Shown: positions 8,662 to 64,000 of the stretch, piece after piece | Position numbering within the stretch: position 1 is the first letter of the stretch | How the letters are laid out: each line of letters opens with the position of its first letter | From: Lepidodermella squamata | Taxonomy: Eukaryota; Animalia; Gastrotricha | Reading direction: 5' to 3' | NCBI GenBank assembly: GCA_047495785.1 | Contig: JBLDXI010000004.1 | Location: forward strand, 1,426,001 to 1,490,000 | DNA length: 64,000 bases | Made by a program: the position numbers and the translations under genes | Notes under the pieces: generated by a model | The model's database searches: none | Seen by the model: the letters and a program-made list of their open reading frames with translations, nothing else | What the model was told of the DNA's origin: nothing

Positions 8662-10006
8662 CGGAGGCGATATATCAGTCATGCATTTGTCGTGATTCAG
8701 CTGAAAGGTGACCAAGTTTGAGAACAGCTTAACCTGTTATAGAGAAGCAGTTGCTACCGGAAAATCCGTGCTTTTGGTTCAGCGTTACCTGAATTTGATT
8801 TAGGGGACAAGCGGCGTAGCAAGACAGGCGGTTAGATGAATCTTTGCACGAAACGGCATTCTGACAACCGAGAGTGAATGCCCCAACAGAAAACAGAAGA
8901 ATAACTACTTACTCCGAGCAGGCAAGCTGCGCGGTTGACGTAGACTTTGCTCGAGTATTGCTGAGTTTCATTGCTGGCGAAACAGCCAGGGCTCTGCGGT
9001 CGGCAGTCGTTGAACTTTTTCGTCGCAGAATCAAAGCACCGGATGTGCGGCTTTTCGCTGACTGGAACTGTGACTGAAATGAAAAAGGGGACTATTATCA
9101 ATTTCTACCCAGGTTTGTACCCAATTTTTAAAATGGGGAAATAATTAAAAAGTAGATTTTTTCAGTTGACATTCAATTGACAAAAATCGGCACGAACCAG
9201 TTCCATTGGTGCATGCTGCAAGAGTTGGATACAGAGTCGATTCAGTGACCTAAAAAAACCAGGAATCATCAAAGAATAAACACATCAACCCTTTCAAACC
9301 GCTCACCCAGTTGTTTGGGCAGGGGTACGGGTCCGGAACGCAGGTCACGATGACGTTGTTCGAGATGCAGCGCCTGAATTTTGAAGTCTGAAATTATAAA
9401 AATAGAAAGCATAATCTATAATTGCCTTTAGTTATCAGAATTCTCACCTCGAATGCAGTTTTCTTCTTCTCGCATTCGTTGAGGTTGAATTTCAAACTCA
9501 ACGTCGGTTTTTGATCATCGAACCAGAACGTCTGGAGGAGCAAAATAAAATGATAGTCTCATGCGTAATTATTGACTCATCGAACGAGGCTTACATTCAT
9601 GTCACCCTGGTTGTTACAGCCAATGTTACCTGGTACGCAAAACGGGGTAAGAGCCTCGTATTTGTAGCACATCCTGGCGTTCTATAAATATAACAGACAA
9701 CGATGAACATCAATTTAGCAGAGAAGTTAACAGACTCCGGTGTTGCAGACCCCGGCTGTTCGGAAGGTTGAGCCCAACTATCAATAGAGAAATATTTCTA
9801 TTGATTAGCTCTACGGAGAAATTTGACAGTAAAACCTGATATTCGGCGAGTGGATCACAGCCTTTAGCAGCTGATACGCAGCTGGTGAATTGGTTGCTGA
9901 ACTGCGAGAAGCACCGAACACTTGTCACAGCAACCTCTTTACCCAAAGCCTTGTCGCTTTGCGCTAGCATGAGGGCTAGCAGCAGAGCGTGGAAATGCGA
10001 AGCCAT
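8662..10006 (-). CDS. Paralog A1: signal peptide + five 4-Cys repeats (3' end not resolved)
   Basis: Nine exons: MASHFHALLLALMLA..RCFSQFSNQFTSC..GCDPLAEYQ | LGSTFRTAGVCNTG | NARMCYKYEALTPFCVPGNIGC.. | TFWF..NLNECEKKK | RRCISNNVIVTCVPDPYPCPNNW | VTESTLYPTLAACTNGT | ..HIRCFDSATKKFNDCRPQSPGC..ACLLG | NAVSCKDSSNRLSCYAACP | VKLFS..HDKCMTDISPP. No terminal repeat-6/CTL exon found downstream. Confidence 0.8.
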
Positions 10007-11035
10007 GTTATCGTGTTAACTTTGAAAACAAATAAGCTAAAAATTCACGTTATGAAAATTATAACTAAAGAACTGTGAATTACGGTGCCATACTTTATAT
10101 AGTGAATTTGAGCGACCTGAATTTGAAAAAAGTTTGGCACGCGACTACATTATTGATCAACCAGCGCTCTATCCGCCCATTAGCAAAGTTGACTATTTTA
10201 AAAAAATCGACAGACTAAAAATTCCCTTTTCCAATTATTTTAATTTCGGCTGAAAAATATTAGATTTCACGGTCTATCGAACGAGCTCAGGTCCATGTTA
10301 AAGGCTCGCATGATTAGTTTCCTAGAATTAGTTGAAAACAGCTGTTTAGCTGACTTTCGGCGAATCTGCCATTCTTCTGCCGCGGTTGGCTCTTCAGGAA
10401 ATTTTTTGAATATTCTAAGAAAATTAGTTTATCAATATTGAGAACTTAATGTATCAAACGATATAAAATTCGTCGGTTATATATTTTATTTTGATTTTCC
10501 GAGATTTTATGGTCGTACAAATTCGGCATTGAGTTCTTTTTGGGTCCCGTCGTTGTTGTTATGAACTGGCTGAAAAAAACTAATTATTTCGACGGAATCA
10601 GGCATTTCGAACTTGATTTCAATGCTCTTCGGGTGGCTGAGGTTTTTGCGAGGTGGAAAAGTCTGCTGATCGTGCCGAACGAGAACTTTTGGCTTTGACT
10701 GGTCAAGAAAAATGGCACTGGGATGATCTCTACCGCTTTTTGGCCAATCTTATTCCAGGCCTATGACCTATATTGTTAGGATTTTAACAATGATAGGTCT
10801 TCTCAATTATAGATAAATAAATAAAGGCTGATGATAAACTACAAACTACTAGCATTTATTCTCACGAATGAAATCATAATTAGCCGAATAAATAATAGCT
10901 CAATTCAGAATACGAGAATACGAGAATACGATAAAGAATACGACGTGGCTAGTCATTGTTTGAAGTAACGTCAGCAGTTATTCAATAACTAGCAGTCGTT
11001 TATGAAGATGGGCAACTGACTGGCGGCTTGTTAAC

Positions 11036-14000
11036 CTAATGCGTGCCAGTCGTGAAAGCGGCGCAGTTGATTTCGACGATTCGCATTTCTTCAAAACTCA
11101 GAACCTTGTTGAACAAGTTCAGGCAAGCCAAACTGCCCAATAGCTGGTCTTGCTGGCCTGACCATGAGCTGTCAAATGGAAGTGAATGAACTATGCGTAG
11201 GAACTATAAAATGATATGCTGAAACTAACCGCCCTAGGCTGAATTCCCCGCTAGCCGTGAGAGGGCGCGAGCTTCCAACCAATACACCCTCCGTTTGGAT
11301 ATAGAACCGCAGCTCATTGTTGTTGGCATTGTACGTTATCGTCAGAAACTGCCATGCCATTGATGATGGTGCCTGGATCGATTGAGAATAAAAAGAACTA
11401 CCATACGGCCGAATTTGAAAGAATCCGCCACTTTTCTGTAGTTCAAGTCCTGGCATACCTCCATCTGGGGCGAATTCGAATATCGAGCCGATCGAGCCGT
11501 CTGGACTAGTGGCTAGTAGAGTGATGGTGAAACTGCCCGTGCTTAGCTTGACTTTATCAGCAACCACGGCTATTAGCTCGGTTGAATTGAAATAGAAGGC
11601 CGTGCTCGGTACGCCGAACGGTCCGGTGATTCGTGGAAGAGGCGTGTTTGGTGCCGTCGCATCGGCTCTGGACTCGACCACGTCATTGAAATCAGAAACC
11701 AGAGGCCATAGGGCAGTGTTCTCAGGTATGATAGCTCTTAAATTCTCAGGAGCCCAAGTTTGCCCAGCGTGGATTTGTAAGCATCGTCTTCGAAGTATCC
11801 ACAACTGCTGGATTGATAGGGCTTTGTTGTATATCGATAAGCAAGACGCAAAGAGCGGGGCTTCGGCGATGGAAATTGCCCCAATATTCATTTTAGTGCT
11901 AGTAACTGGCACCTCTCCGCTCACCGTGTAGGCGAGGTTGTCGCAAACTGCTGTCAGTTGATTGGATGCACGGTCGTAGATGACAGCAACAAAAATCCAA
12001 GCTGGGAATTGACTCAAAGTCGAACATTGAAATTGTTCGAACCCTGACTGGGAATCTGTGAAAACAATTTGGTGAACTCCTACAAAGGTTGGAATATTGC
12101 AAAAGAGCCAAAATTAGGACAAGTTTACCTTAGGGGGCATCCATAAAGGACGTCCGGCTTTCGAGGGGGGAGGGGGTCGACCAAAGTGTGACTCGCGACT
12201 GAGGGGGGAGGGGGGTCGGGCGAGGTCGGACACGCGACATTATCAAAAAATTTTATTTAGCAATGTGTTTTATTTAGCAGTCACACTCGACGGATTTGCA
12301 CCACCTGTTTCAATATCAAGTCAAAATTACCGTACTGCCCGAAAAAAAAGCCAGCCTCAAATAAATGGCAGCCTCAAATAAATGTCAGAGGTTAGAGGTC
12401 GTTCGAGATAATAAATGTCAGGCCCGAAATAAATGTCAGGTCAATTGCAGGGAATATACTGAAGATCACTAATGAGGTCATTATAGCCATTCTGAATGGA
12501 GATAATTTCTACTCTTGGCTTATAGAAAGGTCAGGGACCAATTTTTGGGTAAAAATACGTAGATTCTCAGGAAAATATATGCCATTTTGGTACCCAGGCA
12601 AGTTACTAGTTGGTTCGAATAAATAAATGTCAGGCCCGAAATAAATGTCAGTCCCTTTTAAATGTCAGGGGTTCATCAGCGTTTGAAAAAAACAAATGTC
12701 ATGGTTTTTGTTCCGGGCAGTACGGTAGCCAATTTTCACCACTACTTAGAACTGTAAGTAGTACGAGGACACTGTTAAGTCGGTTTTAATCGTGTTTAGC
12801 AGCGGTATCGTCCTCGTTATAACCCACGCTCATTAAATTTTAGGTCAGGTGCAAGCTGCTGCTATTGACAATTTCAAATTAGTTTAATTTTGACGTCCCT
12901 ATTATTGTCACTCATGGCGCCATTTTCCACCTAAAAGTTCGCGAGCGCCGTTCAACTCGATAGTAATTTACCGCCGTTCTCGGTCTAGCTACGCGGTTCT
13001 ACCTACACCTGAGCGTGTGTAACTTTGGGTCACACAATGAAAACAATGAAAAAGAACAAGCGAAAAATAGCGTATTTTTTGTCACAAACAGGGGGGGGGG
13101 GTGAACCAGTTTGTGACATGCGAAAGAAGGGGAGCTCGGTAGATGTGACATCAAGGGGGGGGAGGGGGGTTGAAAAATACCATTTTGAACCGGACGTCCT
13201 TTATGGATGCCCCCTTAGTATACAAACAACATTAAGACTACTTTCGAACCCTAGCGTAAACATGAGGTTACCCAAGGTCATAACTTGACCATCCACAGTC
13301 CGAACAATTTGGTTACAATTTGTATCGTGTTTAAAGCTTAGGTAACAAAGGACATGAGCAAGCTCCAAAAGTGTCTTGGATGATCGTCTTTAAATCAGAG
13401 CTTTCATGGCAATTTTCATAATTAGGCCACTCGCGATCGAAGCGAGCCTTAGCTGACGGTTTTTCCGATTTTGAGTCCGAGAAAATGGGCCGAAAATGCA
13501 TAATTTCTTAAAGCTAAACGCATATCTGCTCTTCAAATTTCAGGAGGATATGGCTGAGAGAAACGCTGAGAGGATATTCAGAGAAACGCTGGCTTACCCG
13601 TGAATATGAGAAGCGTGTTGTTGGAAGATGCGTAAAAAATGCGAAATAATAATGCATCATCGTAAAACACAATGATCGGCGATAGAACGGTAGTTGCGTG
13701 ATAGAAGCCAGCATAAATCGAAATTGTGAAAGACGATTGGCTGAGATCCAGTTTGCTACTCTTGATTACCAGATAGCCGGAAGAACCCCCTATAGCAAGC
13801 CCAGTTTTTTCGAATGCGAACGGGCCAGATAGGAAAAGAGTAGCAGCATACGCATTTATACCATTGACGCCATTCCCGCTAATATCGTTCAGGTCATAAG
13901 TACTAGTCAACGGTAAATAAGCCAAATCATTCGGCAGCCCAAAAGGCATCTCTGAAAATGACAGCCTATGATTTCAAGTGCGAACATGCGACCAACTCAC

Positions 14001-17000
14001 GTTGCTCGCATAACTCCAAGGCGCTGAACAATAAACCATTAGATACCTATGCGATCAGCGATCAGTTTACGATGACAGGAAGATTTAAAATGCTTCTCAC
14101 GTAATTTTCAGGGCAGCTCTTATCAGAGGAAACACATTGATATAGCATCAGCAGTTGATTCGTGCACAAGATGTACTGTATATAGAAAATCAAAACATCA
14201 TCGTTAAGGTTCAGCTTGAAAGCAAGTCTTATAAAATTGATAGATCAAGTAGTACATCTGTAACTCTGTTCTCATAAAATTGTAAAAATTTCAAGAATTT
14301 GCGAAAATTTGAATTATGCAAAGAACAAGTGTCGAAGTTGTGTGTTCTTCAATATGTTTGATTGTTAATTTGAAATTGTTTGATTGTTTGATAAATACCG
14401 AATTGGAAGGACATTATGCAGGGATATAACAGACCTAAATAATTACCGTATATTACCAGAATCCATCATTGCCTCTATAAAACCTACCACGAAGTTTTCA
14501 CTTACGAATGATGCTCTGCAGGTGGCATAATTTTCGGAATATGTCCCAGTGGCGAAAACAGTTGTCTGAAAATGCCGAACTTGATAACGAAAAATGTGAA
14601 CAACGACAAACCGTGAGCTCTCCTTGCGGGCAACTGGGCGAATCCTGGCATGTTCTCGCAACGGCGCATCGATAGGCACTCTGAAAGACTGGATAATAAA
14701 AATGACGCGTGAAAGTGATCATCCATACCGCATTATTGCATGCAATCTCAGACGTATAAGTGACGCCTCCAACCTAATGAAAACGTTGAAGCACAGCCAA
14801 GCAGCGCAACGCTTTAACTAACGGAAATTGATGGGCTGGTACAAGATTGGAAACAGCCAGTGTAGGATTTGTCGCCAGCGTTGTAACAATGCACGTGAAT
14901 GGTTGCTGGTAACATCAAAAAGTCAGAGTCAGCAATCGAGGTTGAATATCAAAGACAAACTTATTTTGCAGATTGCGAACGAGTCAAAGCTAGCACCATC
15001 CAGGCTTGTGGTCTGAAAAGTAAAAAGTAATATTATCCAAATCGGAATTCTGTTGAGAGAAACGTACAGTAGATACTGGGCAGTCCGCGCTGATTGGGAC
15101 GCATACAGCGAGCGTATTCGAGTTCGGCCGGAAGCAACGTTTATGCTTCCCCTTGAGTAAAATTAAGGAGCTTAAAATAATCCGTGACGTCGATGGAAAT
15201 TGTATACCTGAGTTGCAGCAAGGCAGGTTTGGAAGCTGTTAACAAACGCCGTAGAACTTGATCCGACGATTCCAACCTACAACATTTTTTAGTTTAACAT
15301 AAAACAAGGATAAGACTAATGCTAATGCGGGGCATCACGTCATATTTCCCGGCGCCGCTCGGGCACGATTCAAGGCAACTGCCACCGCTTGAAGCATCGT
15401 AACACATTCTGATAGGCTGATAGGAAACTTTTCAGTCATGGCTTGATAATTGATGAAATAAGACTAAACCCCTGTTTCGCAAGCAGTTTTCGTCGTGAAG
15501 ATCGTTAGGCTTTGGAACTGTTTTCGGAAATAAAATATTCAGATGTCAAATAAAAAATGGGATCCTACAACGGATTCATCGCATGGCATCGGAGCGGGCT
15601 TGCATCCAGAAAAGGTTGACCCAGTTGGACCAAAACAACGTCGATGAGGAAAATAGGACCTTGGGGCTGTAATAGACACGATTAGACTCTGAAATATTGA
15701 TGTTAATTCGTCAACGAGCCAGATTCGCATTCGCCAAGGTTGTTGAATGTGACGCCAGTCGAAAATTGGCTTGTGCTACCAGCCGGGCAGGTTTGAGAGC
15801 CATCAGAAGGGATGCATTTAACTAGTTTGTAGATTTGCATATTCAGGCAAAATCGATGAGGTTTCTAAACGATGCATTTATTTTCATGTTATCAGGTGAT
15901 GAAAGTACCATGTAATTCGCTAGATAACCCAGGCACTGAGCGTAATTCGACTCGAAATCGTTCATGTCGCTGAAAGTCGCCATCTGAAGAAGAGTAACGG
16001 ATACAGAATCGACAATGCAATTAAAATAGCTCACCAGACTCATTGGCGATCGGCAAATGCTGCGGCAAACGAAGGTCGATGTGGATTTGCATAGCGTAGC
16101 AGGCTTCGGGAATGTAAAAGGGAATGAGCTATTTTCCCTAAAAAAAACCTCATCAAAATACCCCAGCAGAGCAATGTTTCTTATCAATGTAGATTCCACC
16201 GCTAAAAATCTTGAAACGAAATGATTATACTCTCAAATGTCCAATGTCTGAAAGCACTGAACCTGTGTTTGTGTGGTCGCGTTACATCCCGGTGTAGCTA
16301 ATCGGCAGCCAGCGAATGAGCGATCCGAGTTTGAGAAACACCGAACATGAGGCGAGTAGTCTGAACTCCTGACGGCTAAATTAATTCAAAATAGGTAATA
16401 TGTTCAACCAAATTGCGAGTTTTGAATTTTGAATCTTGTTTAATTAACATTCACTGCAATTATCATTATCTTCAATTGTCAATATTTTCTTGGAAATTGT
16501 TGAGAAAATTAAATGGTAACCAAAATGTCATTCTTCAATTTTAATGGATAATCTCGCAGCCGTAAAACATTTTTTGAGCGTCCAATATTTCTTCGATTAT
16601 TATTATTTGAATTTCAGAGTCTTTCGATAATAACGATAACAGTTCCAGTTTAGTTTCGCTTTTCTACTATTAGGGTGTAGGAATTTTGAATGCTGAAATA
16701 TAGGCGCGATTTAACCGTTTGAATTTTAGACTTCGTGGACTCAAACTGAATGAGTTTGATACGAACCTTGAATTTGCCTCAAACACTCGTTCAAGCTGGA
16801 TATCAGGCCCGATTCGCGCTGACACGAAACAGAAAAATCATTAACAATGTAAATTGCTGGAAATCTCACCCAGCCTGGCGGGCAATTGCAGTCGATAGGC
16901 ACGCAAGACATCGTTGAATTGACCCAGCATTTTCTCGCTGGTTTTTCCTGTGGAGCATTAAGAGGAAAAAACCAAGAGAAAATGGCCAAAAATACCATGT

Positions 17001-17494
17001 AGGACCGAGTAATGTTAATGCAGGTAGCATAACGCGGTTCGAACTTAAAACCCACAAATTCTAGATGCTATGAAATAAATGAAAAAATAAGATAATAATT
17101 TAATTATCGAAAAATACCGGAATTTCGTCCTTCGAACAAGGCACGAATTTAGGCAGACATCTCAGCGTGAACTGCTTCGGGCTGAAACAGCTATGTAACA
17201 ACGCCGGCTGAAATAAGAAATAACGTCAAGATATGATGAGATTCTTCAAATCGACTTACACTTTTCTTACATCCCGCATAATCGGGATATGTTGGGCCAA
17301 GAAGCTTTTCGTGATAAATGTTTCAAAGCTTTTGGGTGTTGGGGCAGCATAAATCTCACCTGAGTTTCTTCGAATAGAGAGCAATCGCCTTTGCAATCTA
17401 TGAAATCGTCGTTCCATCGCGATATACATCGCTTGTAGCAGTCAACGCCGCTAAAAGCGAAGACTAAGATTAAACTGGCCGTTATTAAATTCAT
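11036..17494 (-). CDS. Paralog B1: signal peptide + 12 four-Cys repeats (4 triplets) + 2 LamG/pentraxin-like domains
   Basis: About 26 exons, from MNLITASLILVFAFSGVDCYKRCISRWND to ..CAAFTTGTH* at 11036. C-terminal exons have Laminin_G_3-like motifs (DISGNG, FTISIY/FTITLL, WQFLTITY, LRFYI, FSLG, GSLACLNLFNKVL). One donor (~15719) is GC. Confidence 0.8.
12133..13214. mobile_element. PIF/Harbinger-type MITE in B1 intron
   Basis: TIR GGGGGCATCCATAAAGGACGTCCGG; 3-bp TSD TTA. Confidence 0.85.
12330..12725. mobile_element. Tc1/mariner-type MITE nested in the PIF MITE
   Basis: TIR CCGTACTGCCCG flanked by TA; internal AAATAAATGTCAG repeats. Confidence 0.7.
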
Positions 17495-18739: not shown

Positions 18740-21174
18740 ACGCGTAACTCGCGCGGATCGGGACGCAGACAGCCAACGAATTTGTGTTGATATTAACACA
18801 GCGTTTATGCTTTCCCTGTAAATAAACGATATGAAAATAATCAGGGACAGTCATGCATTTTTTCTACGTTAATCGCAGCTAGGCAGGTTTGGAAATTGCT
18901 ATCAAGAGGAGTGCTGCTAGTTCCGACAAATCCCAGCTGTAAAATAACGGAAAACAATAATGAAGAATAGGCGTAAAAGTTGGATATTACGTAATATTTT
19001 CCGGCACGATTCAAGGCAGCTACCACCGTTCGAAGCATCATAACACATTCTGATAAACTGAAGCTTTTTTGACGCTTTTTTGTAGATGGTGAGATGTATA
19101 GAATAATGCCCAACCCCTGTTTCGCAAGCAGTTTTCGTCGCGAAGATCGTTTGGCTGGGGGTCTGTTTCACGAAAATACTCAAATTTAACTGGGAATTAT
19201 TAAAATAGAAGATCTAACATCAGTCCCGTCGCATGGCAACTGAGCAGTCCTGCATCCGGAGAATGTGGACCCGTTCGGACCAAAACAGCGGCGATGAGGG
19301 AAATAGGATTGCGAGGCTGTAAAAATCCCGAATAAACCCGAAATTTACAATATTTTTTAACCAACCATATTCGCAATCCCCACGGTTGGCGAATGTGACA
19401 CTGCTGGAAAATTGGCTAGTGCTACCAGCCGGACAGGTTTGTGTGCCATCAGTAGGGATGCACTTAACTAGAGCGTAGGTTTCCGAATTGAGGCAGGGTT
19501 GGTGAGGTTTCTAGACAGAAAGTTTCCCTAAAAACATTGATTGATCTTGACCATTTATTCAATTACCATATATGCCGCGAGATAGCTCAGGCATTGAGCG
19601 TAGTTCGTCCCAAAATCGTTCGCGTCGTTGAAAGTCGCCACCTGAAAAAGAGTAACGGTAACAAAATCGACTAGGGACATTGTGGGTGGTGTTTAGCATA
19701 GTGAACTCAGAGATGAAGATGTAGATTCCACTTACTGAAAGCCTGAAAACGAAATGATTGAACTCAAATACGAATGGTCCAACAACTATTGAACCTGTGT
19801 CAGCGTGGTATCGTTGCAACCCGGTGTAGCTAATCGGCAGCCAGCGAATGAGCGGCTCGGGGTCGAAAAACACCGAACATGAGGCGAGAAGTCTGAATTC
19901 CTGACGGCTGAAAAAATAAAAAGAAATAAACAATTCAGACGTCCAACGTTACTTAACCCCAATTCATCTCTCGATTTTGCTACTCGCATTCGATGCTTCA
20001 TGAGTTTCGAGTCACTATTTACTTTACGTTACAAGCATAAAACAATTCTGAACATGAAAGTCGATATTTTGGAGTGTCTGAGTACCGAATGTTGCAGCAT
20101 CGGATCGTTTAGCATTTTTGAGTTGATGTAATTAAATTCGATACTTAAGGCTAGATTCCCTAAATTAAATTTCAGATGTCGTCGTTTCAAGATTTTATAC
20201 AAACCTTTAATTTTTCTCAGGCACTTATTCAAGCTAGATATCGGACTCTGCCGCTGAAATAATGGGGAAAAATATGATTATTATTATTTATAAGTTATAG
20301 TCTCACCCAGCCAAGCGGACATGTGCTGTCAATGGGGACGCAAGTCATCGTCGAATTCATCGAACATTTCATCGCCGGATTTGCCAATAAAAGAGATAGT
20401 GAAATTAACATTTAAATGGAATCTTCAAATCGTAAATAGTACCATGTAGGGCTGAATTTGTTTGATGCAGTCATTGTAGCTCGGCCCCAGACGAAAATCA
20501 GTAGACCGAGAGCTCAGTAGATCGTACGTAGATCCAAAAGGCAAAATATTCGTCTGAAATAGCTGTTTTTCTGACCTATTGTCGATCTATTAGACTGGAT
20601 CTACGGGCATCAATCCTGTGTAGGTCCAAATTTTACCACTGGATCTATGTAGGGTCGAACCCATACGATCTATCCCAGTGTCAAATTTAGATCCACCCAT
20701 GGTCTACTTTTTTTCGACTGGGGCTTAAATGCCAAACCTGTGAAATCTCGGTGCTGTGAAAATCATTCGAAAAAAAATAAAATATATCCATGCTTTATTG
20801 AGGAAGGTACCGGAATTTCGTCATTCGAACAAGACGCGAATTGCGGCAGGCGAATTGCAAACGTGAACTGTTTAGTGTTATAACAGCTATGAGCCCACTG
20901 AGAATAGGTAATCGGTCAAACAGAAAAATAGTTTCGTTAAATCGACTTACGCCTTGCTTACAGCCTGCATAATCAGGAAATACTGGTCCAAGCTATTCGC
21001 GAGAATGAGTTTCAAAGCTGTAGAGCCAATTTTTACCTGAGTTTCTTCGAATAGAGAGCATTCGCCTTTGCAATCTATGAATTTGTCGTTCCATCGCGAT
21101 ATGCATCGCTTGTAGCAATTGCCGCCGCTAAAAGCCAATGCTAGGATTAAACTGGCTGTTAATTGTAAATTCAT
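18740..21174 (-). pseudogene. Paralog B2 pseudogene
   Basis: Exons homologous to B1 exons 1-16. Exon 4 is split by a MITE, exons 8-9 are largely deleted, exon 14 has a frameshifting deletion, exon 16 has indels, and no LamG exons follow. Confidence 0.8.
20486..20722. mobile_element. CCCAG-ended MITE (animal EnSpm/CACTA-like) inside B2 exon 4
   Basis: TIR CCCAG(A/T)CGAAAA..AGTAGACC; 2-bp TSD GC. Removing it restores HRDFTGLAFKPSYNDCIKQIQPYM. Confidence 0.75.
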
Positions 21175-29340: not shown

Positions 29341-29454
29341 CCTGGCTAATTAGCTCCTCGAATTAAAGCCCTGAAAATTCACAGGAAAGCCAGGTCCAGA
29401 TGTTAAAATAATTGCCCGACTCGAATCAAAGCCAAGTGATGAAAATAAGGTTGA

Positions 29455-40589: not shown

Positions 40590-40659
40590 TTATAATAAAT
40601 TCCAATTCCATGAATTCCAACAGAATCATGACAAGTGTTTCAACGAAATATCGCCGCCT
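40590..40659 (+). pseudogene. Remnant of A-family repeat-5b exon
   Basis: FQQNHDKCFNEISPP|gt aligns with A1 FQLNHDKCMTDISPP|gt. Confidence 0.65.
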
Positions 40660-52680: not shown

Positions 52681-53757
52681 TTTAACCTGGCCGCTAACGT
52701 TATTTTTGTACGCGTTTTAACAGCTAAAGAGTTTAATAATGTTATGACTTTGATATCTCACCTTTTTTCACGACGTCGCGTTTTGAACACGTTTTTGCAA
52801 AAATGGAACAGGCAGCGATGTTGCCATTTCCGACGACATTTTTCAGCTTCGGCTCGGCCAGAAAATTGAAAATGAAAATTCAGCCCGATTTAATGTTGAT
52901 GTCAATAGGTTTTCGAAAAATCGTCAACATTTTCTCGCTTCGTTCGATTTATATTGAAATTAAAATTAATAGGGAAATATACAGCGAAGTGTTTTCATCA
53001 AGTGACTGCCAGCTGAAGCATTACAATGAAGTCTTGTGCATGCCCAACTGAAAAATAAATAGGTAGTTGAGAGCTAGTTGAGAAATAAAGTTTTATCAAC
53101 TTGAAAATATGCACAATGTGAGGCAGTAGTTTTCACCAAGGTTTACACAGGCGAGAAGTAAATGAACGACGATACCGGCTGCAAGACCACGAAATCGAGG
53201 AAATGATTTGAAATGAGCTATTTAACCTATTGATATCTGATATATTGTGTTAAAGCTTCGGGTGTTTCTGATTTGATTTCAATTTTCTCTAGATTTTGCC
53301 GTAAAACACAATCTAACTCGATCATCAGCTTTTTCTGCAATCTTTTACAGCCTTATTTTTCGTTATATTTCAACATATCATCAAATCAATATAAATATTT
53401 CAACGATTCATGCATTTATAGTATTTTTGCGTAGTCTTGATTAAATCGCGTGCGGAATATCATGAATGAAAAATCGTATTCAAGTTTTTTTTCAAATTGA
53501 GATGAAAATAATGAGTGTTAATTATGAGTGCGATTTTTCTCGCAGTATGCGATGGAGGTTTTCAGCATTGCTTTTCACAATATAGCAACGATTTTACGCG
53601 ATGCATGGGGGAATGAATGTTTTACATAGTTTCAGCGAAATTTAATTGTAATTGATTCGTGTTTTGAAATTTGTCCGATGGTTGCGCCATTATAAAAGTG
53701 TCCGACGGCTCTTACGTGTTCCAGACAGCCGACTCTTGCGATTTCATGACTTACGTG

Positions 53758-53808: not shown

Positions 53809-55991
53809 TCTAGCAAGCTTTTTGATCTCCACCAAGAAGCAAGAAACGAGGGCTATTAGTTTTTACCTGCTATTTTTGAGTAGCATACCTTAGATTAGTG
53901 CCCGTTTTGTACACAATAAAACAAGAAAATGTGCAAAAAAAAAGCAAGAAACGAGGTTTTCCTGATTAATTGTTTCGAAAGGATTAGGCTCACTTGGAAG
54001 GTGGTATGACTTTGGTTGGCGCAAAATAATGATCACTGAATCCTCCAAATGCCGCCCTGTCGCGATGAGATACGGAATATGTTTATTAAAACCAGGCGTT
54101 CTGATCTAGGTATTTGTTTAAAACGGAGAGAAACAAATTACTTTTACCTCTAAAAGAACGCTTTATTCTCAGGAAACATCTAATTTGACTTTAGCAGTAG
54201 TTATTGCTGTAATGCCCATCGCGTATCATCAAATCGAACTTCAGGAAGCGAAAAAGAGAATACATTTTTTCTTGAACCAAACACAGCCTCAAAGCTCATA
54301 ACAGGAAGCGAAAATCAACGTTACAAATACAGTGTGTCCGTCAAATAATATGAGGCTATTTATAGTCCAAAAGCAACAGCAAGCGTGGCGCGTGCCAGAT
54401 CTGGCGTCTCATTTTTTTCATAAGATGCAAAAAATAATACGTCAATGAAATCGAAAGCTTTATTTACTACTGCTAGTTAAAATTTGTATGCATCAGCTAG
54501 TGTTGATGATTAAACTTTCTTCGTCTTAATTCTTTCAGGTGATAGAGAAGGTGATGTTCTGACCATCAGGAATGCTAATATTTTCCTCTTAACGAGCCGC
54601 GCCTTTAAAAATTATCTTAATTATCAGGTTCATCTCCGTCATCACCATCTTCTCCCTGAGCCGTTTCAGTTTTTTGTTTTGCAAGGGCCATTTTGAATTC
54701 GGCCATGGCCAGTTTTACAAACCGCTTTTTTGGAATCGGGTTTCCCCTTTTTCGCGTACATCGACTTGCCCATCGACTTGGGTCTTCAACAGCCGCGGGA
54801 CATTTTCTAAATTTTTTCGTAATCTTACATGTCTAATTTAATAACTGCCGTTGAAGCATAAAATGCAACAAAAGCAACAAATGCAACAAATGCAATGAAA
54901 GCAACTAAAGCAGTTTCCATTACGACCTGGTAATCTGTTTGAAATGAGTTCCGCGTTTTGAAATAAAGGGGTAATGTCGCTTTCGCCAATTTGTGTAGCA
55001 TCCGGGCGCTATCGGCTAACCGTTATATACGTGAATTTCACATACCCGCAAGAATACGTCCAATGGCTAGTACAAACAGTTTTAACTGAATTGGATAAGA
55101 AAATTTGCTATTTAAATGGTTATATTTTTTCCAGATATTAGGTTGACATTGTTGCGCGTTTGATCTTATTGCATGAATATTCAGGGCAACTCGTTGTCCC
55201 CAAAACTTTAGCAATGTACAAAGCTTGCAGGTGAAAATCCCGAAGCTAATGCTTTCGTTCCGAAGAATGTTCTTTATCTTGATTAAATAATACAAATTTT
55301 GGCGGAGCAATAATTGATATTTTTCCAGCAATGAACAACAATAGCTGTACTATCATTCAGTGCTGCGTTTTTTTTGCCTCGTGCACGACTCGTGAACAGG
55401 CGCAATCAAAATGCTATATATAGGCTCATATTATTTGACGGACACACTGTAATAATAAAACTCGCATACTGCGATTCGATATTTCGAATCGTTACTGCAA
55501 TCATCGTCACTCATCAAAAAAGCAGAACCAGAGTAAGAAACGATCCCACATCGATTAGGATTCGGCGTATAACCAGGCATGAATAAAGTTGGATCATACG
55601 TGAAAGCCGAACCGTCCGCCCATTTTTGGACGCCGGACTGTGCTGGAGGCAGACCAATCCATGCCGTTTCTGTTTGCTGTAATTGGCCGTTCAGCTGGGC
55701 TGCTTCGCTAGCGGATTTAATTGATCCCATGATCCCCATATCCCAACATATATCGGCAGCATCCGTATAATTCCAAGTGCGATACGTGTTTTTACCGAGA
55801 TATAAAAACTTTTTAGCATTTTCACAATTCGATTTGCTGGCAAATTCTTGGCTAATAGGAATGCGCTTCTCCGAGTTGGCGTCACATCCAACAGTGCTTG
55901 GCCTGCAGGTTACTGAACCGTCAGCAGGTCGCAGGCATCGATGGTAAGTGATCTATCAGAATCAAAATTCAATTCAAAATTAGGATTGAAG

Positions 55992-56383
55992 CATAGAGAA
56001 AAAATGACCAGAGTAAGCACTCAAGCTAAAATGTCTTAATCTTCATTTTTATTCGAAGTTGACTTTCTCAAAACGCATGTCTTTGTTTTTCACCAAATTT
56101 TGTCTGCCTGCGAGCTGCTCTTTCACGTGGTATAGGATTTGAGGTGGGCAACCGAACCGTTGTTACGATACAAAAACCTCGTTTTCACTATGGCTTCCTT
56201 TATTTTGGTGAGATCAAGACTGAGCAGCAATTGCCCACCTCAAATCGTATACCACGTGAAAGAGCAGCTCGCGCTCTATAGGCATGCAAAAACGAAGATA
56301 TCCGCTTTGAGAAAGCAATTTTCAATAATGCAAATCAAAATTTTAGATTGAGTGTTTATACTCGGGTCATTTTTATCTCTATG
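55992..56383. mobile_element. Palindromic hAT-type MITE
   Basis: Long inverted arms CATAGAGA.AAAATGACC.GAGTA; 8-bp TSD GATTGAAG. Confidence 0.85.
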
Positions 56384-57031
56384 GATTGAAGATTTAATTC
56401 AATGGCAATTAATGATGCCTTGATAAATTATTTGATACTATGAGCTTTGAGCAAAAAGGGGAAACCCCAGTGTGCGAAGTAGGATCCGGGAGCTGAGGTG
56501 TTTTCTATTTGTTTTCTACGATTGCGAAAACAGCTTCTCCTGTCATTGAAACAGCTGATAACAAGAAAAAAGTGCAAGATTATGTGTTCAATGCCTGTGA
56601 TTGATCTTGTGGACAAGCTGCATAGCAAGACGTTCGATTTGATGAATCCGAGCATGAAACGGCATTCTGTTAAACGTTATAAAAAAAGTAATTGCTCGGT
56701 TGCAAATACATTATTGTGATAACTTACTCCGAGCAGGCAAGTAGCGCGGTTTGTGTAAACTCTGCTCGAGTATTGCTGGGTTTCATTGCTAGGCAAGCAG
56801 CCGGAGCTTTGCGGTCGGCAGTCGGTGAATTTGCCAGTTGTCGAATCAAAACAGCGGATGTGTGGCTTCTCGGTGATCGGAACGGTGACTAGGAAAAAAT
56901 AACATGAATCATGTTATCATCAGTGCTTTGGATTTGATTTGGTTTCATTTGATTTAGACCCTATTTTCAACGATTTAGATTTGAAATGATTGATTTAAGC
57001 GGGGAAGTATTCTGATTTGATTGATTTTGAT

Positions 57032-57439
57032 CGTAAAGAAAAAAGAACCAAAGTAAGCACTCAATCTAAAATGTCTAAATCTTCATTTCTATTCAAAGTT
57101 GGCTTTCACAAAACGGATATCTCCGTTTTTCACCAAATTTTGCATGCCTTTAGAACGCGAGCTGCTCTTTCTCGTGGTATAAGATGTGAGGTGGGCAACC
57201 CAACCATTGTTACGATAAATAAAACCTCGTTTTCACTATGGTTTCATTTATTTTGGTGAGATCAAGACTGAGCAGCAATTGCCCACCTCAAATCTTACAC
57301 CACGTGAAAGGGCAGCTCGCGTTCTATAGGCATGCAAAATTTGGTGAAAAACGGAGATATCCGTTTTGAGAAAGCACTACTATAATAATGCAGATCAAAA
57401 TGTTAGCTTGAGTGCTTACTCTGGTCATTTTTTTCTGTG
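57032..57439. mobile_element. Second copy of the palindromic MITE, nested in a CAGTGCTTTGG MITE starting at 56921
   Basis: Similar to 55992-56383; 8-bp TSD ATTTTGAT. Confidence 0.82.
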
Positions 57440-58640
57440 ATTTTGATATACCCTTGGAGATGCAATCGAAAAAATTGATACAGTCGAACTAGAATCTCTT
57501 CAATATTAGGCGCAGCGATGGTCGAAATAAAATTTGGGCGGTACCACGGGACATTCCATGCGAAAAACTGCATAGGTCGAGGTGTTACACGGCTAATTAT
57601 CTCATTCGGAACAAAAAATTCATTAGGTTGCAAGACAGTAATAAAAAAATTTATCTCCAATCAAAATTTTGAAAATGGATTTGGATCAGCCGCTAAAAGT
57701 TAACCCCGAGATTTCTGAGGTGGGTTTCAGATCCAAATTAAGTGGTTTTATTGGTCTTCTTTGAAATTTTCAACTCATGTTAAAAGCCGCCCGACCGGAA
57801 GCAAAGATTGATTTTGCGATAATTTCGTTATTATGATGCATGGTGCATGAAAATGTGTGTTTTAGGGTGAGGAATTATGGTAAAAAACTGCGAAATCCGC
57901 TGGAATCATTTTTTTTTAAATTAGGATCCCTCCTGTCTCATCACCTTTCAGATCCTTGTCAAAGTTATGTTTTATTCCTCATTCACGAAAATTCGACTCA
58001 CCCGCGACGTTGGTGCAGGACGTCAGGTTTGAGTACAGCGTCGATTCGGTGGCCTAGCAGGAAAAAGAGCATGAGTCTCACAAGCTAATTAAAAAAATAT
58101 TTTATATATTTGTTTGGTTGAACATGAGCAAAATGTTCATATCTGAACGGAGCTGAAGGCGAGTTAAGATGAGTAAATCGAGTACGGCGAGTTCAGATGT
58201 ATAAACGATTCATGAATATTATACCGTGAAATATCGAATTGGCCAAGCTACTCGACCTATATTTTTGGGGACAATTCTATATTTAATAATAATTTGTAAT
58301 TCGTGGGCACGCAGCAGCGAGGAAAGTAGCACCAGGGACGCCAGGGACGTCTCAAGCATATTAAGGAATTTTCAAATTTTCGAATTTTGATAATAAAAAT
58401 CGATCTCATCTGTCGGTAAATTCAAATGAATTCTTGAATTGGAATGATCAAAACTAACCCAGTTTTCCGGGCAAGTGTAAGGATCTGGAACGCAGGTTTT
58501 GATGGCGTTGTTCGAGGTGCAACGGCGGAATTTCAATGTCTACAATAATGGAGCAAAAATCAATCATTAGCTGCGACAGTAATTTGGGAGTTGCTCACAT
58601 CAAAAGCAACTGAAGAATATTAAATTTTCTGAGATTTTTT

Positions 58641-59786
58641 ATGAAAAATATTGAAATGATGGAGACGGAAGACGCGATTCACATCATGATTCAGTTGGTC
58701 AAAAACACCGACACGGCGATTCTTGAAGAACTCGGGACCGATGAGGCGAGTTTACTGGACGGAATCGAGGCAGTACGATCAAAACATCGGCGAGTTCTGG
58801 CAGAGCTGTCATCGCTGAAGGATGATCTGCTGGAATCGCGAGCTAATTGTCTCAAACTTCATGACGAATTGAAGGAGGCGGTGAAAACAGCCCAATGGGT
58901 GCCACCGGAGAAACGTTTTCAAGAAGTCGAAGCGAAGTTACATCTCGTTCAAAAAGAGAATGCCCGCGTGTCACTAGCTGTGTTCGGGAAAGACCGCCAG
59001 AGTGTGTACGACACCAAGCGCAAGCTGGAAGCGAGCGGCTTTGGAGTTGCCGATGTCGTATTTTTACCGCAGGGCAACGTTGCGAAATTCAAGTTCGTCA
59101 CTCGAGAACAAGCAGCCGCAGCCTTGAAAACCATGAAGGATAACAAGGTTAAGTGCGACTGGTGGGAGTCGAAACACGAACGGGAATTCCGGATCATATG
59201 CGATTCTTTTATCGACAGTCACCCGGAAAAATCGCAACTGAAACGCCGAGGGGCTGAAATTTTAAAAAATGGTAAGCCGTTCAAACGGTATGAGTCTTCG
59301 ATCAAACAAATCATCGACACGGAAGCCAAGGTGGAGAACGAGGATGAAGAGGATGATCCTCCGTCGATGATACGTGGCGGCCGGGGCAACGACACCCGGG
59401 CGTCGATAAAACCCCCGCCGGTCCCGGATGTCTCGGTAACGGGAACAACGGACAAGGATAACGAGGTCAAGAAAGGTCAAAGGCCAAGGGTCAAAGAGTG
59501 TCACGATTGCGGCGACACCCAACATCTGCGGCGTCATTGCCCGACGCGGCTCGCGACCATTCAATGCTACAGCTGTGAAGAGTTTGGCCATTACGCGAAC
59601 GAGTGCAAGTCCGAAGTGCAAAGGCGGTTTGACCACCAGGCACGGGGCCATCAGTCACGTGGGCATCAATCACGTGGCTACGTACCACAAGGATTTGAAT
59701 CACGTGACGGCGGGGCGCATGATCAGGCGCAGCTCGTGGCTCTGGTATGTGAACTGCTTCAAGGCGCAACCAGACGACAACGTTGA
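58641..59786 (+). CDS. LINE ORF1: coiled-coil region + two CCHC zinc knuckles
   Basis: CHDCGDTQHLRRHC and CYSCEEFGHYANEC; heptad-like N-terminal half; RGHQS repeats. Confidence 0.88.
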   Translation: MKNIEMMETEDAIHIMIQLVKNTDTAILEELGTDEASLLDGIEAVRSKHRRVLAELSSLKDDLLESRANCLKLHDELKEAVKTAQWVPPEKRFQEVEAKLHLVQKENARVSLAVFGKDRQSVYDTKRKLEASGFGVADVVFLPQGNVAKFKFVTREQAAAALKTMKDNKVKCDWWESKHEREFRIICDSFIDSHPEKSQLKRRGAEILKNGKPFKRYESSIKQIIDTEAKVENEDEEDDPPSMIRGGRGNDTRASIKPPPVPDVSVTGTTDKDNEVKKGQRPRVKECHDCGDTQHLRRHCPTRLATIQCYSCEEFGHYANECKSEVQRRFDHQARGHQSRGHQSRGYVPQGFESRDGGAHDQAQLVALVCELLQGATRRQR

Positions 59787-60053
59787 TGGGGCGGGCCTGA
59801 CTGCTTGAACTATAACCGGTTTGAAATTGTTGATAATGATGATATCCAAAACTTTGTAAATAGTAACTATGATGCCATTCTTGTTGAAAAAAATGAATTT
59901 TGTAAATATTTGTCTGATTTGCAGAATACGCAGTCAGGTCGAAATCATAACCAAAATCAAAGTCCGAAATTGGTGGGGAAAAAGAGAAGAAGGCGGAAGA
60001 ATCGAAAACATAAAAAACAATCGAAAAATCTTGATTTATTAGAGGCAATTTTT

Positions 60054-63000
60054 ATGCTGACTTACGGCTCGCAAAATTTATCAACGGGTAAAAACAAAAT
60101 TCCCTCTATTGCGGAGGAGATGAGGGAACGAAAAATTCATGTTCTTTTATTACAGGAATTTCGTAAGAAGGGCAAGGGTGAGAAGCACCAAGATGGCGTG
60201 ACTATTATTTATTCCGGGGTCGATGCGAGCAGCAAAGTTAACCGGGCTGGAGTAGCATTCTGTATTTTAGATGACCCAAACATCGTTATCACGAGCTACG
60301 AACAAATTGATGAACGAATAATAACACTTGAAATTAAGGTGGCTGGAAGAAAAATTTCGTTCGTAAATTTATATGCGCCAGCGTCAGCTGATGTAGACGA
60401 ATTAGATATTTATATTTCAAAAGTTGAGAGTGTACTTGAAAAAATCGAAAAATCACGGGCCGAGAATGATATTGTTTTGATTGGCGGCGATCTTAATGGA
60501 GTTGTTGAACGAAGTGACGATGGAAATAGCCAGACGGTGGGCAAGTATGCAGGGCTTAGCGGAAATACTAAAGGCGAAAGATGGTTCGATTTTGCATGCA
60601 GAAATCAGTTATATTTTGCCAACACTTTTTACCCGAACTGTGGTTTTACTTATTTTCGAAAAATGGAACCTAACAAGAAAAGGAAGAAGGTGGAAACTAA
60701 AAGCTATTTTTGCAGATCATTTATAGATTATCTACTAATTCCACAGTATGCGCGCAAATTTGTTGTAGATTCACATATCGCCGAAGAGGCATGTTTAGGA
60801 GTTGATCATCACCTAGTAGTGGCTAATTTAGCAATCAACGGGACGAAAGTCTTAGAAGAAAGCGAAGAAGTCACGCGGGTCGCTCATGAAAATTTGGTTA
60901 AAGGTAAAAACGCGCGCCGACTAAAACAGATAATGGCTGAAAAATTGAAGAGAATAACCTCCTCGACTGACGCTGAGCAAATTTGGCTCGAGTTCAAGAG
61001 CATTAATGAGGAAACAGAGAAGATTTGCGGGCGCAAGCGAGTTCGAAAAAAGGGGAAAAGAACCCGCTGGTGGAAAAATAAGGTGAAAAATAAAGTCAAG
61101 GAAAAGAAGCGCAAGTTCAAAACCTTCACTAAAGCTAGAAGGGTGGCGGAGGAAAAGGGGGATGTGGATAACGAGGAAGTCAAAGCGTTATACGACGAAT
61201 ATGCCTTATGCAGAGATGAAGAAAAAATTGTGGTTGAAAAGGCGAAAAAGAAAGCAAAAGTCGAGATTGCAGACGAATTTTATGCCTTAAAAGATAAACC
61301 GCAAGAGGCGCAACAGCTATTTTGGCGGATAGTTGAAAATGCTAGAAAAGGTTCGGGCAATTTGGAACAACGGTTGGTAATTGAAGGGGAGAACGGTGAA
61401 ATTTTGACGGAAGCAGAGAAAGTAGCGGGGAGATGGAGGCAGCATTTCATGGGAGTGGTAGATGGCGTTGAACTGACCACAAAAGTAGAAAATGAATCTC
61501 AGCAAGGTTTCAAAAATCAATGCGACGTAAATGAACCGGCACGAGCCATGGAAAACATCTCGCGCGACGAAATAGTAGAAGCCCTTAAAAAAGAAAAGCT
61601 TGGAAAATCACCGGGTCAAGACGAGGTGCGTAAAGAGATGCTAATGGCAATAGAGGAAATAGGAACAGAGTGGCTGTATGTACTGTTTAACAGAATTTGG
61701 ACGGAAAGGCGAGTTCCTGACGATTTTCTCAATCTAATTTTGATTCCGATACCCAAGAAAGGTGACTTGAAAAAATGTGCGAATTACCGAGGAATTAGCT
61801 TAATAAGCATAGTCGCGAAATGTTACGCTCGTATTTTGGAACGCAAACTTCGATTAAAAGTTCGGAAAATTTTAGAAGACAACCAGCACGGGTTCATGGA
61901 AGGTAAAGGCATAGGTGATTGTACCTTCATGCTAAAACAGCTAATAGAAAAATTTGTTGAGTTTGAGCAATTATTTTTTATTACTTTTATGGACTTGGAG
62001 AAAGCCTACGACTTTGTTGACCGCGAAGAAGTGTGGAAAGCGCTAGAGGGACTGGGAGTAGAACAAGATCTCATCGAAAACATAAAGGCCTTGTACAGAG
62101 ACAGCATAGCAACGGTTAGGGTTGGGGGTGTTGCTTGCGAGCCTTTCAGGGTCACAAAAGGGCTCAGACAGGGCTGCCCTTTATCACCGTTGTTATTTAT
62201 TTGCGTCTTCAACGTTGTATGCCAGAGAGTTAAGTTAGAAAAGTGCGGAGTACCGCTCACTGACGAAGAGTGGCTCAATATTTTAGCTTTTGCTGACGAT
62301 ACTGGGCTGTTAGCCATGCATAGAAACGACATGCAACTTCTTATCGATATTTTTGTTGAGGCTTGCCAGAGTCTAGGGCTGAAAATAAATGTACCAAAAA
62401 CCAAATTCATGGTTATTAACAAAGGAGATGAAATTGTTGAGCCTATTATTATTTACAACGAACGACTGGAAGAAGTTAGTAGCTTCACATATTTAGGCAG
62501 TATAATTACCTCAGATGGAGCTTCAAAAAGCGACATCAGGGCCAGAATAGAGAAAAGCTGCAAAGCTTTCGGTGCCTTGAAAAAATATATTTTTGGAAAT
62601 AAATCTATTCCTATTAGCGTAAAAATGAAGTGTCTTCGAGGTACAGTAGAACCGGTTGCGAAATTTGGGGGTGAAAATTGGACGATGACCAGTGAGGATG
62701 AGCGGCGACTGAACGTTTGTCAGATGCGGTGCCTACGTAGCATTTGCGGTGTCACTCTGAGGGACAGAGTTAGGAATGATTATATTAGAGAAAAATGTGA
62801 AACTCAAAAATTATCTTCGATAGTAGCAAGACATCAACTTAGGTGGTACGGCCATGTTGCTCGCATGGACCCCGAACGGCTAACCCACCGAGTACGGTAT
62901 TGGAACGTGCCGGAGGGGTGGAAACGGCCTAGAGGCAGACCTAAGCTAAGGTGGCTCGACTGTATTAAGAAAAATTTGGGGCGGGTGGGAATTCCAAATT

Positions 63001-63068
63001 TAGAGGATGCAGATGATCTAGCGAAGGACAGAAATGAGTGGAGGCTGAAAATTCATAGTCTGGGGTGA
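60054..63068 (+). CDS. LINE ORF2: AP endonuclease + reverse transcriptase
   Basis: LLLQE, NLYAP, GGDLNG, IDYLL, DHHLV (APE); KSPGQD, NYRGISL, QHGF, DLEKAYD, GLRQGCPLSPLLF, FADD, FTYLGS; RTE-type tail RWYGHVARM..RPRGRPKLRW. Frame is open from 59787; first ATG at 60054. Confidence 0.95.
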   Translation: MLTYGSQNLSTGKNKIPSIAEEMRERKIHVLLLQEFRKKGKGEKHQDGVTIIYSGVDASSKVNRAGVAFCILDDPNIVITSYEQIDERIITLEIKVAGRKISFVNLYAPASADVDELDIYISKVESVLEKIEKSRAENDIVLIGGDLNGVVERSDDGNSQTVGKYAGLSGNTKGERWFDFACRNQLYFANTFYPNCGFTYFRKMEPNKKRKKVETKSYFCRSFIDYLLIPQYARKFVVDSHIAEEACLGVDHHLVVANLAINGTKVLEESEEVTRVAHENLVKGKNARRLKQIMAEKLKRITSSTDAEQIWLEFKSINEETEKICGRKRVRKKGKRTRWWKNKVKNKVKEKKRKFKTFTKARRVAEEKGDVDNEEVKALYDEYALCRDEEKIVVEKAKKKAKVEIADEFYALKDKPQEAQQLFWRIVENARKGSGNLEQRLVIEGENGEILTEAEKVAGRWRQHFMGVVDGVELTTKVENESQQGFKNQCDVNEPARAMENISRDEIVEALKKEKLGKSPGQDEVRKEMLMAIEEIGTEWLYVLFNRIWTERRVPDDFLNLILIPIPKKGDLKKCANYRGISLISIVAKCYARILERKLRLKVRKILEDNQHGFMEGKGIGDCTFMLKQLIEKFVEFEQLFFITFMDLEKAYDFVDREEVWKALEGLGVEQDLIENIKALYRDSIATVRVGGVACEPFRVTKGLRQGCPLSPLLFICVFNVVCQRVKLEKCGVPLTDEEWLNILAFADDTGLLAMHRNDMQLLIDIFVEACQSLGLKINVPKTKFMVINKGDEIVEPIIIYNERLEEVSSFTYLGSIITSDGASKSDIRARIEKSCKAFGALKKYIFGNKSIPISVKMKCLRGTVEPVAKFGGENWTMTSEDERRLNVCQMRCLRSICGVTLRDRVRNDYIREKCETQKLSSIVARHQLRWYGHVARMDPERLTHRVRYWNVPEGWKRPRGRPKLRWLDCIKKNLGRVGIPNLEDADDLAKDRNEWRLKIHSLG

Positions 63069-64000
63069 TGAATATTATTCTTCTCGAGGGTTTTTGCATA
63101 TTTTGTATTACTGATGAAAAATGATTTCGGTTTGGCTAGGATCGGTCCCCTAGACTGGTCCTCCTCCGACACGCGCTCTGCTTGCCAGGTCACCCCCGTG
63201 ACCTGTCCGGCAGGGTGTGTACACCGGAGTGATTTTTATTCCTCAGCACGCCTTTTTGTTGTTTTTCTACTGTTGTTTTTTACTGTTCTTTTATAATCTC
63301 AAAGTGCTGAAGAATAAAGAAAATGTTATGTTATGTTATGTCACATCAAAAACAGCTCGCTGCTTCTCACATTCGTTGAGGTTGTATTTCAAGCTCAACT
63401 CCGGCGACTGATCGCCGAACCAGAACAACTGAAACACGTAAAACAGTGTTTTATTCATATGGAAAAAAATCACCAGAACTCAAGATACATTCATATCGCC
63501 TGGGTTGTTACAGCCAAAGTTTCCAGGTACGCAAAACGGGGTAAGAGCCTCGTATTTGTAACACATGCGGCCATTCTGAAAATTATCAATGAATTCATCA
63601 AAAAATGGGAAATAAAAAAAAGAAACATACCCCATTGTTGCAGACGCCAGTTGTTCGAAAATTCCGCCCCACTGGTTGGTGAAGATAAAATTAGAATCAG
63701 TTAGTCGTGTTGACTGTGGTAAACCTGATATTCTTTAAGGGGATCACAGCCATCGGCAGCTGGAACGCAGTTTGTGAATCGGTTGCTGAACTGCGAGAAG
63801 CACCGAACCCAGTTCAGCTGCTGCTTACCCACCGCCAAGCCACTCATCAGCAATAACAACGAAACTGTGTGATAAGCTGTCATTTTGTGAAATTAGTGAA
63901 TGTTTCAACCAGGGTTGCACTTGTATAAACAGACTGTTTAAACACACGTGTTTAAACACATGTTTAAACAGTATAAAGTCCAAGGAGTTTATACATATGT

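Follow-up and report, generated by a model that had tools for sequence, protein, structure and literature searches.

A gastrotrich gene cluster encoding tandem four-cysteine modules, probably of an undescribed family, with candidate lectin-type domains

Introduction

Does a cluster of genes in the gastrotrich Lepidodermella squamata contain an extracellular protein module that has not been described before, and if so, what would that module do in the proteins that carry it? New extracellular modules are rare, and most animal mosaic proteins are assembled from a few dozen old domains. The cluster lies in a 64,000-nucleotide (nt) stretch of the genome (GenBank assembly GCA_047495785.1, contig JBLDXI010000004.1, positions 1,426,001 to 1,490,000 of the forward strand), which we refer to as the window and within which all positions below are numbered. 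An initial annotation had proposed that its genes encode a signal peptide followed by tandem repeats of about 45 amino acids (aa), each with four cysteines (Cys), and that these repeats cycle in a fixed order of types I, II and III to form a 12-Cys triplet belonging to no recognised family. In the reading that we favour, these are secreted mosaic genes in which an array of the module would serve as a stalk for lectin-type heads, the module itself being undescribed; to this reading, taken as a whole, we assign a probability of roughly 0.55.

Results

Gene models and architecture

Exon borders were read by eye on the minus strand in three frames, with a script requiring AG/GT borders and a consistent frame. 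The window has a GC content of about 42%, and the introns are GT-AG introns, mostly of 44–64 nt; together with the mosaic extracellular genes, these features mark an animal-type nuclear locus. The models for A1, B1 and B4 were as follows:

8644–10006, minus strand: A1, the one A-type gene that is intact; 9 exons for a signal peptide and five repeats (I, II, III, I, II; 20 Cys)
11036–17494, minus strand: B1, 26 exons, 1012 aa; signal peptide, 12 repeats and two predicted LamG_3-like domains
14001–17494, minus strand: repeat exons 1–23 of B1
13598–13951, 11230–12055 and 11036–11168, minus strand: predicted LamG_3-like exons 24–26 of B1
45170–52360, minus strand: B4, 26 exons, 1010 aa; architecture as in B1
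46657–52360, minus strand: repeat exons of B4
46251–46598, 45357–46194 and 45170–45302, minus strand: predicted LamG_3-like exons of B4

All three models reproduced the proposed signal peptide and tandem four-Cys repeats, and B1 and B4 each have the four triplets (12 repeats) claimed for them. The A genes had been credited with two triplets, but A1 has one triplet followed by I and II, that is, five repeats rather than six. The B paralogs had been described as a signal peptide plus repeats; both parts are there, but the proteins continue for about 430 aa past the four triplets, into the two predicted LamG_3-like domains.

Exons 1–21 of B1 and B4 encode eleven repeats, and both genes keep a gtaagt donor after exon 21. 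Repeat 12, of type III, lies 0.3 kb (B1) or 2 kb (B4) downstream of repeat 11 on exons 22 and 23, which are kept in both paralogs (B1 14101–14175 and 14001–14046; B4 46761–46835 and 46657–46702). It starts with Y-x-L-C-T-N-Q-L-L-M in exon 22, ends with L-C-E-Q in exon 23, and has canonical splice sites, introns of 54/58 nt and a phase-1 end. Exon 24, which has no ATG in B4, starts in phase 1, and exons 25 and 26 complete the genes, the last of them conserved in both. The frames of B1 and B4 run without an internal stop across all 26 exons. In B4, intron 21 is 2041 nt long and contains a transposon fragment. The introns of B1 are all GT-AG except intron 11, whose donor region at 15716–15720 (minus strand) reads ctg followed by GCTCGT across the exon border, where B4 has GT; it would be one of the rare GC-AG introns, or else mark an incipient splicing defect.

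The 3′ end of A1 was taken as a read-through past exon 9 because the alternative intron of 27 nt is too short, and a search downstream of A1 yielded no more family exons. Our first models of A1 and B4 had terminal introns of 27 and 31 nt, which were rejected as too short and, in the B genes, superseded by the conserved exons 22–26. A hydrophobic read-through tail of B4, considered as a glycosylphosphatidylinositol anchor or membrane tail, was dropped once the downstream exons were found. An exon-chaining gene finder fused the whole window into one “gene” and was kept as an exon list only. On the Kyte-Doolittle scale (19-residue windows), B1 exceeds 1.6 only at residue 1, and the maximum for B4 (1.52) is also at residue 1; with the N-terminus alone hydrophobic, B1 and B4 are predicted to be soluble secreted proteins.

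Sequencing run X1, a DNA run, had a flat depth of about 47–54 across exons and introns, covered B4 evenly and contained no intron-skipping joints. Inside two B4 introns (50605–50731 and 51113–51493), the depth of the X1 contigs rose from about 50 to 1000–1600, and these stretches are high-copy repeats, probably small transposons. One X1 contig skips 51277–51409, also within a B4 intron.

The four-Cys repeat and the triplet

The repeat unit is 37–57 aa long (about 45) and has Cys gaps of 7–12, 3–8 and 11–26, with an exception in repeat II of the fourth B4 triplet, where the first gap is 3. As originally proposed, the first three Cys of a repeat usually share an exon and Cys 4 falls in the following one; this holds for 4 of the 5 A1 repeats and 11 of the 12 repeats of the B genes, whereas A1 exon 7 and B exon 11 hold a whole repeat each. 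The split repeats are interrupted by a phase-0 intron 4–8 residues past Cys 3. B1 and B4 each have 50 Cys in their 12 repeats, which make up four full triplets.

The fixed I-II-III order was upheld by pairwise comparison: each of the 16 repeats compared (A1 and B4) found its best Smith-Waterman partner within its own type (permutation p = 2e-4), with mean scores of 41 within and 26 between types. Repeats of different types still scored above shuffled controls (25.8 vs 21.9, standard deviation 0.5), and in an alignment of one-exon copies, types I and III keep their four Cys in register and have a common K-P-H-x-(R/F)-C start. The super-repeat (I+II+III) measures about 140 aa.

Intron phases follow the same organisation, as had been claimed. 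In B1 and B4 alike, 19 of 19 introns within triplets are phase 0 and 4 of 4 at triplet ends are phase 1, the latter falling after exons 6, 11, 17 and 23, and the last of them leads into the LamG exon in phase 1. The single triplet end of A1, after exon 6, is also phase 1. Individual repeats have phase-0 inner borders, so that the phase 1-1 arrangement of shufflable extracellular modules, which the initial annotation had invoked, holds at the level of the triplet. Because only the triplet has phase-1 introns on both sides, it would be the unit of duplication.

An AlphaFold2 (AF2) model of A1 exon 7, built with nine sequences, reached a predicted local distance difference test score (pLDDT) of 77.6 and a predicted template modelling score of 0.53. 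It consists of a predicted beta-hairpin (residues 9–14 and 19–25), a third strand (35–37) and a short C-terminal helix (47–52) that carries Cys 4.

Triplet 1 of the B copies has an extra Cys in repeat I (D-C-Y-K-R-C; exon 1, e.g., 52226–52360) and another in repeat III (C-N-C; exon 5, e.g., 51082–51159). Both are kept in B1 and B4, one is gone in the degenerate copy B2 (see below), and the two may form an inter-repeat disulfide. Such a bond would fit a view of the triplet as a single globular 12-Cys domain, with its repeats packed together and itself binding a ligand rather than acting as a spacer, as would the short linker from I to II, the I-II-III order fixed in every copy and the restriction of phase 1 to triplet ends. 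Against this view, a lone module stands ahead of the lectin domain in gene D (see below), A1 stops after I and II, and one module folds by itself in the AF2 model. We consider a 12-Cys ligand-binding domain doubtful, and prefer to see the repeats as modules of a stalk.

Candidate lectin-type heads

The C-terminal parts of B1 and B4 were compared with known families by a language-model feature search (Atlas), in which the 281-aa LamG exon fell among Laminin_G_3/ConA-like clusters (scores 0.96–0.98, recognition 3373), and PF13385 Laminin_G_3 occurred in every family set listed among its 100 matches. This exon would comprise the end of one LamG_3-like domain and most of a second, and the last exon is a third piece with the same end motif. 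Running hmmscan on the LamG exons gave only PF22237 (E = 0.0025), a PDB sequence search with them gave no match, an AF2 model from two sequences had a pLDDT of 30, and a protein homologue search with the 281-aa exon returned nothing within a length window that shuts out 1000-aa relatives. We regard the C-terminal domains of B1 and B4 as LamG_3-like with moderate confidence.

The picture of genes made of repeats alone had also missed a module placed ahead of C-type lectin domains, and a B copy joined to lectin-type exons:

55434–55952, minus strand: D, one open 173-aa exon with a complete four-Cys module and a putative divergent C-type lectin domain
39068–40125, plus strand: C1, D-like (one four-Cys module and a C-type lectin domain), with an in-frame stop
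42543–42943, plus strand: C2, a second D-like copy, with one in-frame stop in common with C1 and another besides
22371–27165, minus strand: B3, a chimera with B exons 1, 7 (partial) and 9–13

In D, the module has its Cys at positions 6, 16, 23 and 43, and the lectin domain, with four Cys of its own, follows directly. By phmmer, residues 58–155 matched snaclec, Reg4 and the lectin of the tunicate Polyandrocarpa in the PDB (E 0.003–0.007), and a WIGL-type motif, a W-x-D-G motif and the four canonical Cys can be seen. We take this to be a divergent C-type lectin-like domain (PF00059) on the strength of these features; a Pfam scan of the D exon gave no match, and a protein homologue search with all 173 aa of it returned nothing within the same kind of length window. 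No 5′ exons of D were identified. The stop that C1 (39940–40125) and C2 (42700–42836) have in common lies at the identical codon of the lectin domain, after I-N-H-G-D, which puts the copying of these two genes after their inactivation, unless this codon can be read differently.

For B3, tblastn of the B4 exons against the window did not find exons 2–6; triplet 1 is lost. The B3 exon at 24610–24907 begins like B exon 13 and continues into non-repeat sequence, and downstream of it lie C-type-lectin-like exons and one EGF-like exon. Of these, the exon at 24107–24388 scored 0.94 in the Atlas feature search, with Lectin_C in 95 of 100 matches. The other lectin-type exons, the EGF-like exon (23363–23514, minus strand), which has six Cys and lies between lectin-type exons, and an E-P-N motif in the exon after it, typical of mannose-type C-type lectins, were read by eye only. 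A PDB search with two of the exons read by eye gave nothing.

Divergence and selection in the paralogs

B1 and B4 are 70% identical as proteins, and all 50 of the 50 repeat Cys are conserved between them; identity of the repeats outside the Cys is 67%. At the DNA level, the exons are 76% identical and the short introns 51%, which equals the background level. The ratio of nonsynonymous to synonymous divergence (dN/dS) is 0.25 in the repeats (dS 0.71) and 0.24 in the LamG part (dS 1.46), and these genes are under purifying selection. The lower synonymous divergence of the repeat region than of the LamG-like region suggests gene conversion of the repeat part, or unequal ages of the two halves. 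A1 and B4 are homologous (blastp E = 1e-24), with the five A1 units matching B triplet 1, then repeat I of triplet 2, then a type II repeat.

Models drawn from DNA alone, in a window where many copies are broken, could in principle be products of exon picking, or functionless dead repeats. We find this hardly credible, since B1 and B4, at a dS of 0.7–1.5, both keep 26 exons open together with their splice sites and every framework Cys, while their introns have diverged to background.

Searches for a known family

The family searches with the module used complete one-exon repeats, which are of types I and III. Eight such modules gave only noise in Pfam (E ≥ 0.19), and a profile of nine module sequences matched no PDB chain at E ≤ 10. 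A type-I profile run against 1.84 billion protein representatives returned three spurious matches, to prokaryote-type repeat proteins; in a local test, this profile scored A1 at 91 bits and B4 at 35 bits. The Atlas features of the module (0.59, recognition 1464) indicated no family, the AF2 model of one module had no fold match in four fold libraries (Foldseek/VIA/Atlas), metagenome scans with conserved A exons and B exons gave nothing, and a literature search gave nothing relevant.

We also compared the module directly with familiar small domains. EGF-like domains have six Cys and three disulfides in about 35–40 aa, and CCP domains, usually encoded by one exon, are about 60 aa long and have four Cys, the first two widely spaced, with an invariant Trp ahead of C4. 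The module has four Cys per unit (two units have a fifth) and no Pfam EGF match, as anticipated from its spacing; its Cys gaps differ from those of CCP/Sushi (PF00084), it has no conserved Trp, and the Sushi model matches no module. To our knowledge, its gaps fit none of EGF, CCP, TSR and FN1.

How much these negatives mean depends on the controls. Pfam detected Trypsin and Sushi in a neighbouring protease gene, and Atlas recognised LamG and lectin from single-exon pieces of the window while leaving the module unassigned. At the exon level, Pfam also missed the real lectin and LamG exons of the window, so its silence on the module is weak evidence. This last result is what one would expect if the proteins of this genome lie far from the available models and the module has itself diverged strongly within a small disulfide domain family already described, or within a Pfam domain of unknown function, and the short reach of the type-I profile points the same way. 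The lack of a match for the one-exon modules in Pfam or the PDB, the contrast in Atlas, the lack of a fold match and the Cys gaps all speak against such a diverged member, and we consider it unlikely. The claim of an unrecognised domain thus stands for the one-exon modules, across Pfam, the PDB, the 1.84 billion representatives and the fold libraries, and its support extends as far as those modules; from these comparisons, the module is probably an undescribed family (about 55–60% by our estimate).

Other copies, relics and neighbours

The remaining members of the cluster and the elements associated with them were as follows:

18747–21162, minus strand: B2, a degenerate B copy
30527–31327, plus strand: A2, A-type exons 1–6 (one triplet), then a GC-rich retroelement
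56595–63883, minus strand: A3, an A-type pseudogene with exons 1–8 present
58641–63068, plus strand: a long interspersed nuclear element (LINE) in A3 intron 4, with an ORF1 zinc knuckle and an ORF2 reverse transcriptase
29425–29571, minus strand: an A-like first-exon relic with two in-frame stops
53515–53613, plus strand: an A-like first-exon relic with a premature stop
40624–40659: a piece like A exon 9, near C1
near 54310–54345: a D-like end piece

In B2, tblastn of the B4 exons against the window did not find exons 8, 9 and 17–21, and two Cys are lost, a framework one from exon 3 and one of the extra ones from exon 5. In A2, exons 7–8 were not found. A3 has a frameshift in exon 2 (41 nt, vs 42 in A1), a GC donor after exon 8 and a degenerate exon 9, and the LINE in its intron 4 was recognised by Pfam (zf-CCHC, E = 2.4e-4; RVT_1, E = 2.5e-32). 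A2, A3, B2, C1 and C2 are thus truncated or broken, and three to four intact genes remain among about ten copies. The family in this cluster evolves by birth and death, pairing one stalk module with various lectin-type heads.

Turnover of this kind, along with the head swap in B3, would also be expected if the repeats formed the recognition surface in a family of immune type and were diversifying rapidly, with the lectin-like domains as accessories. The similar dN/dS of stalk and head, no higher in the repeats than in the LamG part, argues against a hypervariable repeat surface, as does the identity of the repeats outside their Cys, and we think this quite improbable.

Several other elements were noted in the window. 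The retroelement that ends A2 (about 31.4–35.3 kb) has a GC content of up to 0.64 (32–34 kb) in a 42% GC region. At about 31.7–35.2 kb there are long minus-strand open reading frames (ORFs) that, by eye, resemble reverse transcriptases and Cys-His knuckles; the two scanned with Pfam gave no match. Two related plus-strand ORFs (28151–28675 and 47541–48029), one of them within B4 intron 21, resemble the C-terminal end of the LINE ORF2, and a long inverted repeat that resembles a miniature transposon separates the D exon from the end of A3 (56090–56300). Upstream of the cluster, on the plus strand at 1063–6559, is a gene with a trypsin domain (E = 1e-12), a weak Sushi match (E = 0.011) and a 388-aa ankyrin-repeat ORF.

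Discussion

We propose that the cluster encodes secreted mosaic proteins with an N-terminal array of a module of about 45 aa, each copy of which would contain two disulfides. In the intact B genes, four triplets lead through a phase-1 junction into a predicted pair of LamG_3/ConA-like domains. A lone module stands before a putative C-type lectin domain in D, C1 and C2; the array of B3 is joined to lectin exons; and A1 is a head-less form with five modules. The array may be a rigid, protease-resistant stalk or spacer, possibly with a secondary binding surface, that presents carbohydrate-binding heads and keeps LamG_3 or C-type lectin heads away from the N-terminal contact. With its short linkers, N-glycan sites and two disulfides per 45 aa, the array has features that point to a stiff rod, and the three repeats of a triplet may pack as one body, as suggested by their unvarying order and by the extra Cys of repeats I and III in triplet 1. 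On this proposal, the genes would encode soluble lectins for recognition or adhesion and make up a family with fast turnover. A more specific version, which we hold only tentatively and at somewhat less than even odds, is that the module is an undescribed two-disulfide fold whose I-II-III super-repeat, with six or seven disulfides, is the main stalk of a lineage-specific lectin repertoire with LamG_3, C-type lectin and possibly other heads, newly evolved and actively shuffling.

Several points weigh against the favoured reading. The stalk and lectin functions are read from architecture, and the gene models were curated by hand from GT-AG borders in genomic sequence, the sole run found (X1) being DNA. 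The AF2 model covers a single module, which places disulfide pairing and the question of a single body outside its reach. The LamG_3 assignment was confirmed neither by hmmscan nor by the AF2 model, and the homologue search with the 281-aa exon barred 1000-aa relatives by length. Exon-level Pfam was blind to lectin and LamG exons that we take to be real, and a type-I profile that gives only 35 bits on the paralog B4 would miss distant relatives in the big library.

If the reading is correct, the locus is a clean case in which to study how a domain is born and exons are shuffled, with intron phases and the duplication unit still legible, and it marks a large unannotated lectin-like family in this genome. 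The spread is laid out plainly, with a two-exon repeat, a symmetric phase-1 unit of three repeats and the swapping of LamG and C-type lectin heads all within 55 kb. Should the module prove to be a known domain that has diverged, what remains would be an ordinary lineage-specific expansion.

The module is of a familiar kind, being small, disulfide-rich and subject to phase-1 shuffling, and its closest parallels in architecture are well-known proteins. Like the selectins (C-type lectin, EGF and CCP repeats) and the mannose-receptor family, the genes described here combine a carbohydrate-recognition-type head with tandem small Cys modules bounded by phase-1 introns, and reshuffle heads and stalk lengths between paralogs. 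They differ in the number and spacing of their Cys, in heads that are C-terminal and that, in the B genes, resemble LamG_3/ConA and not C-type lectin domains, in having no transmembrane segment, and in a duplicating unit made of three diverged repeats. CCP/Sushi (PF00084) resembles the module in its four Cys (presumably two disulfides), its long tandem arrays in secreted proteins and its phase 1-1 class, whereas the module is shorter, at 37–57 aa, has no conserved Trp and has its Cys 3 and Cys 4 separated by a phase-0 intron. Finally, neurexins, laminin alpha chains and agrin likewise join small Cys-rich modules to LamG-fold domains in extracellular proteins, but their six-Cys EGF modules are interspersed between LamG domains, whereas here twelve four-Cys modules precede two domains of LamG_3 type.

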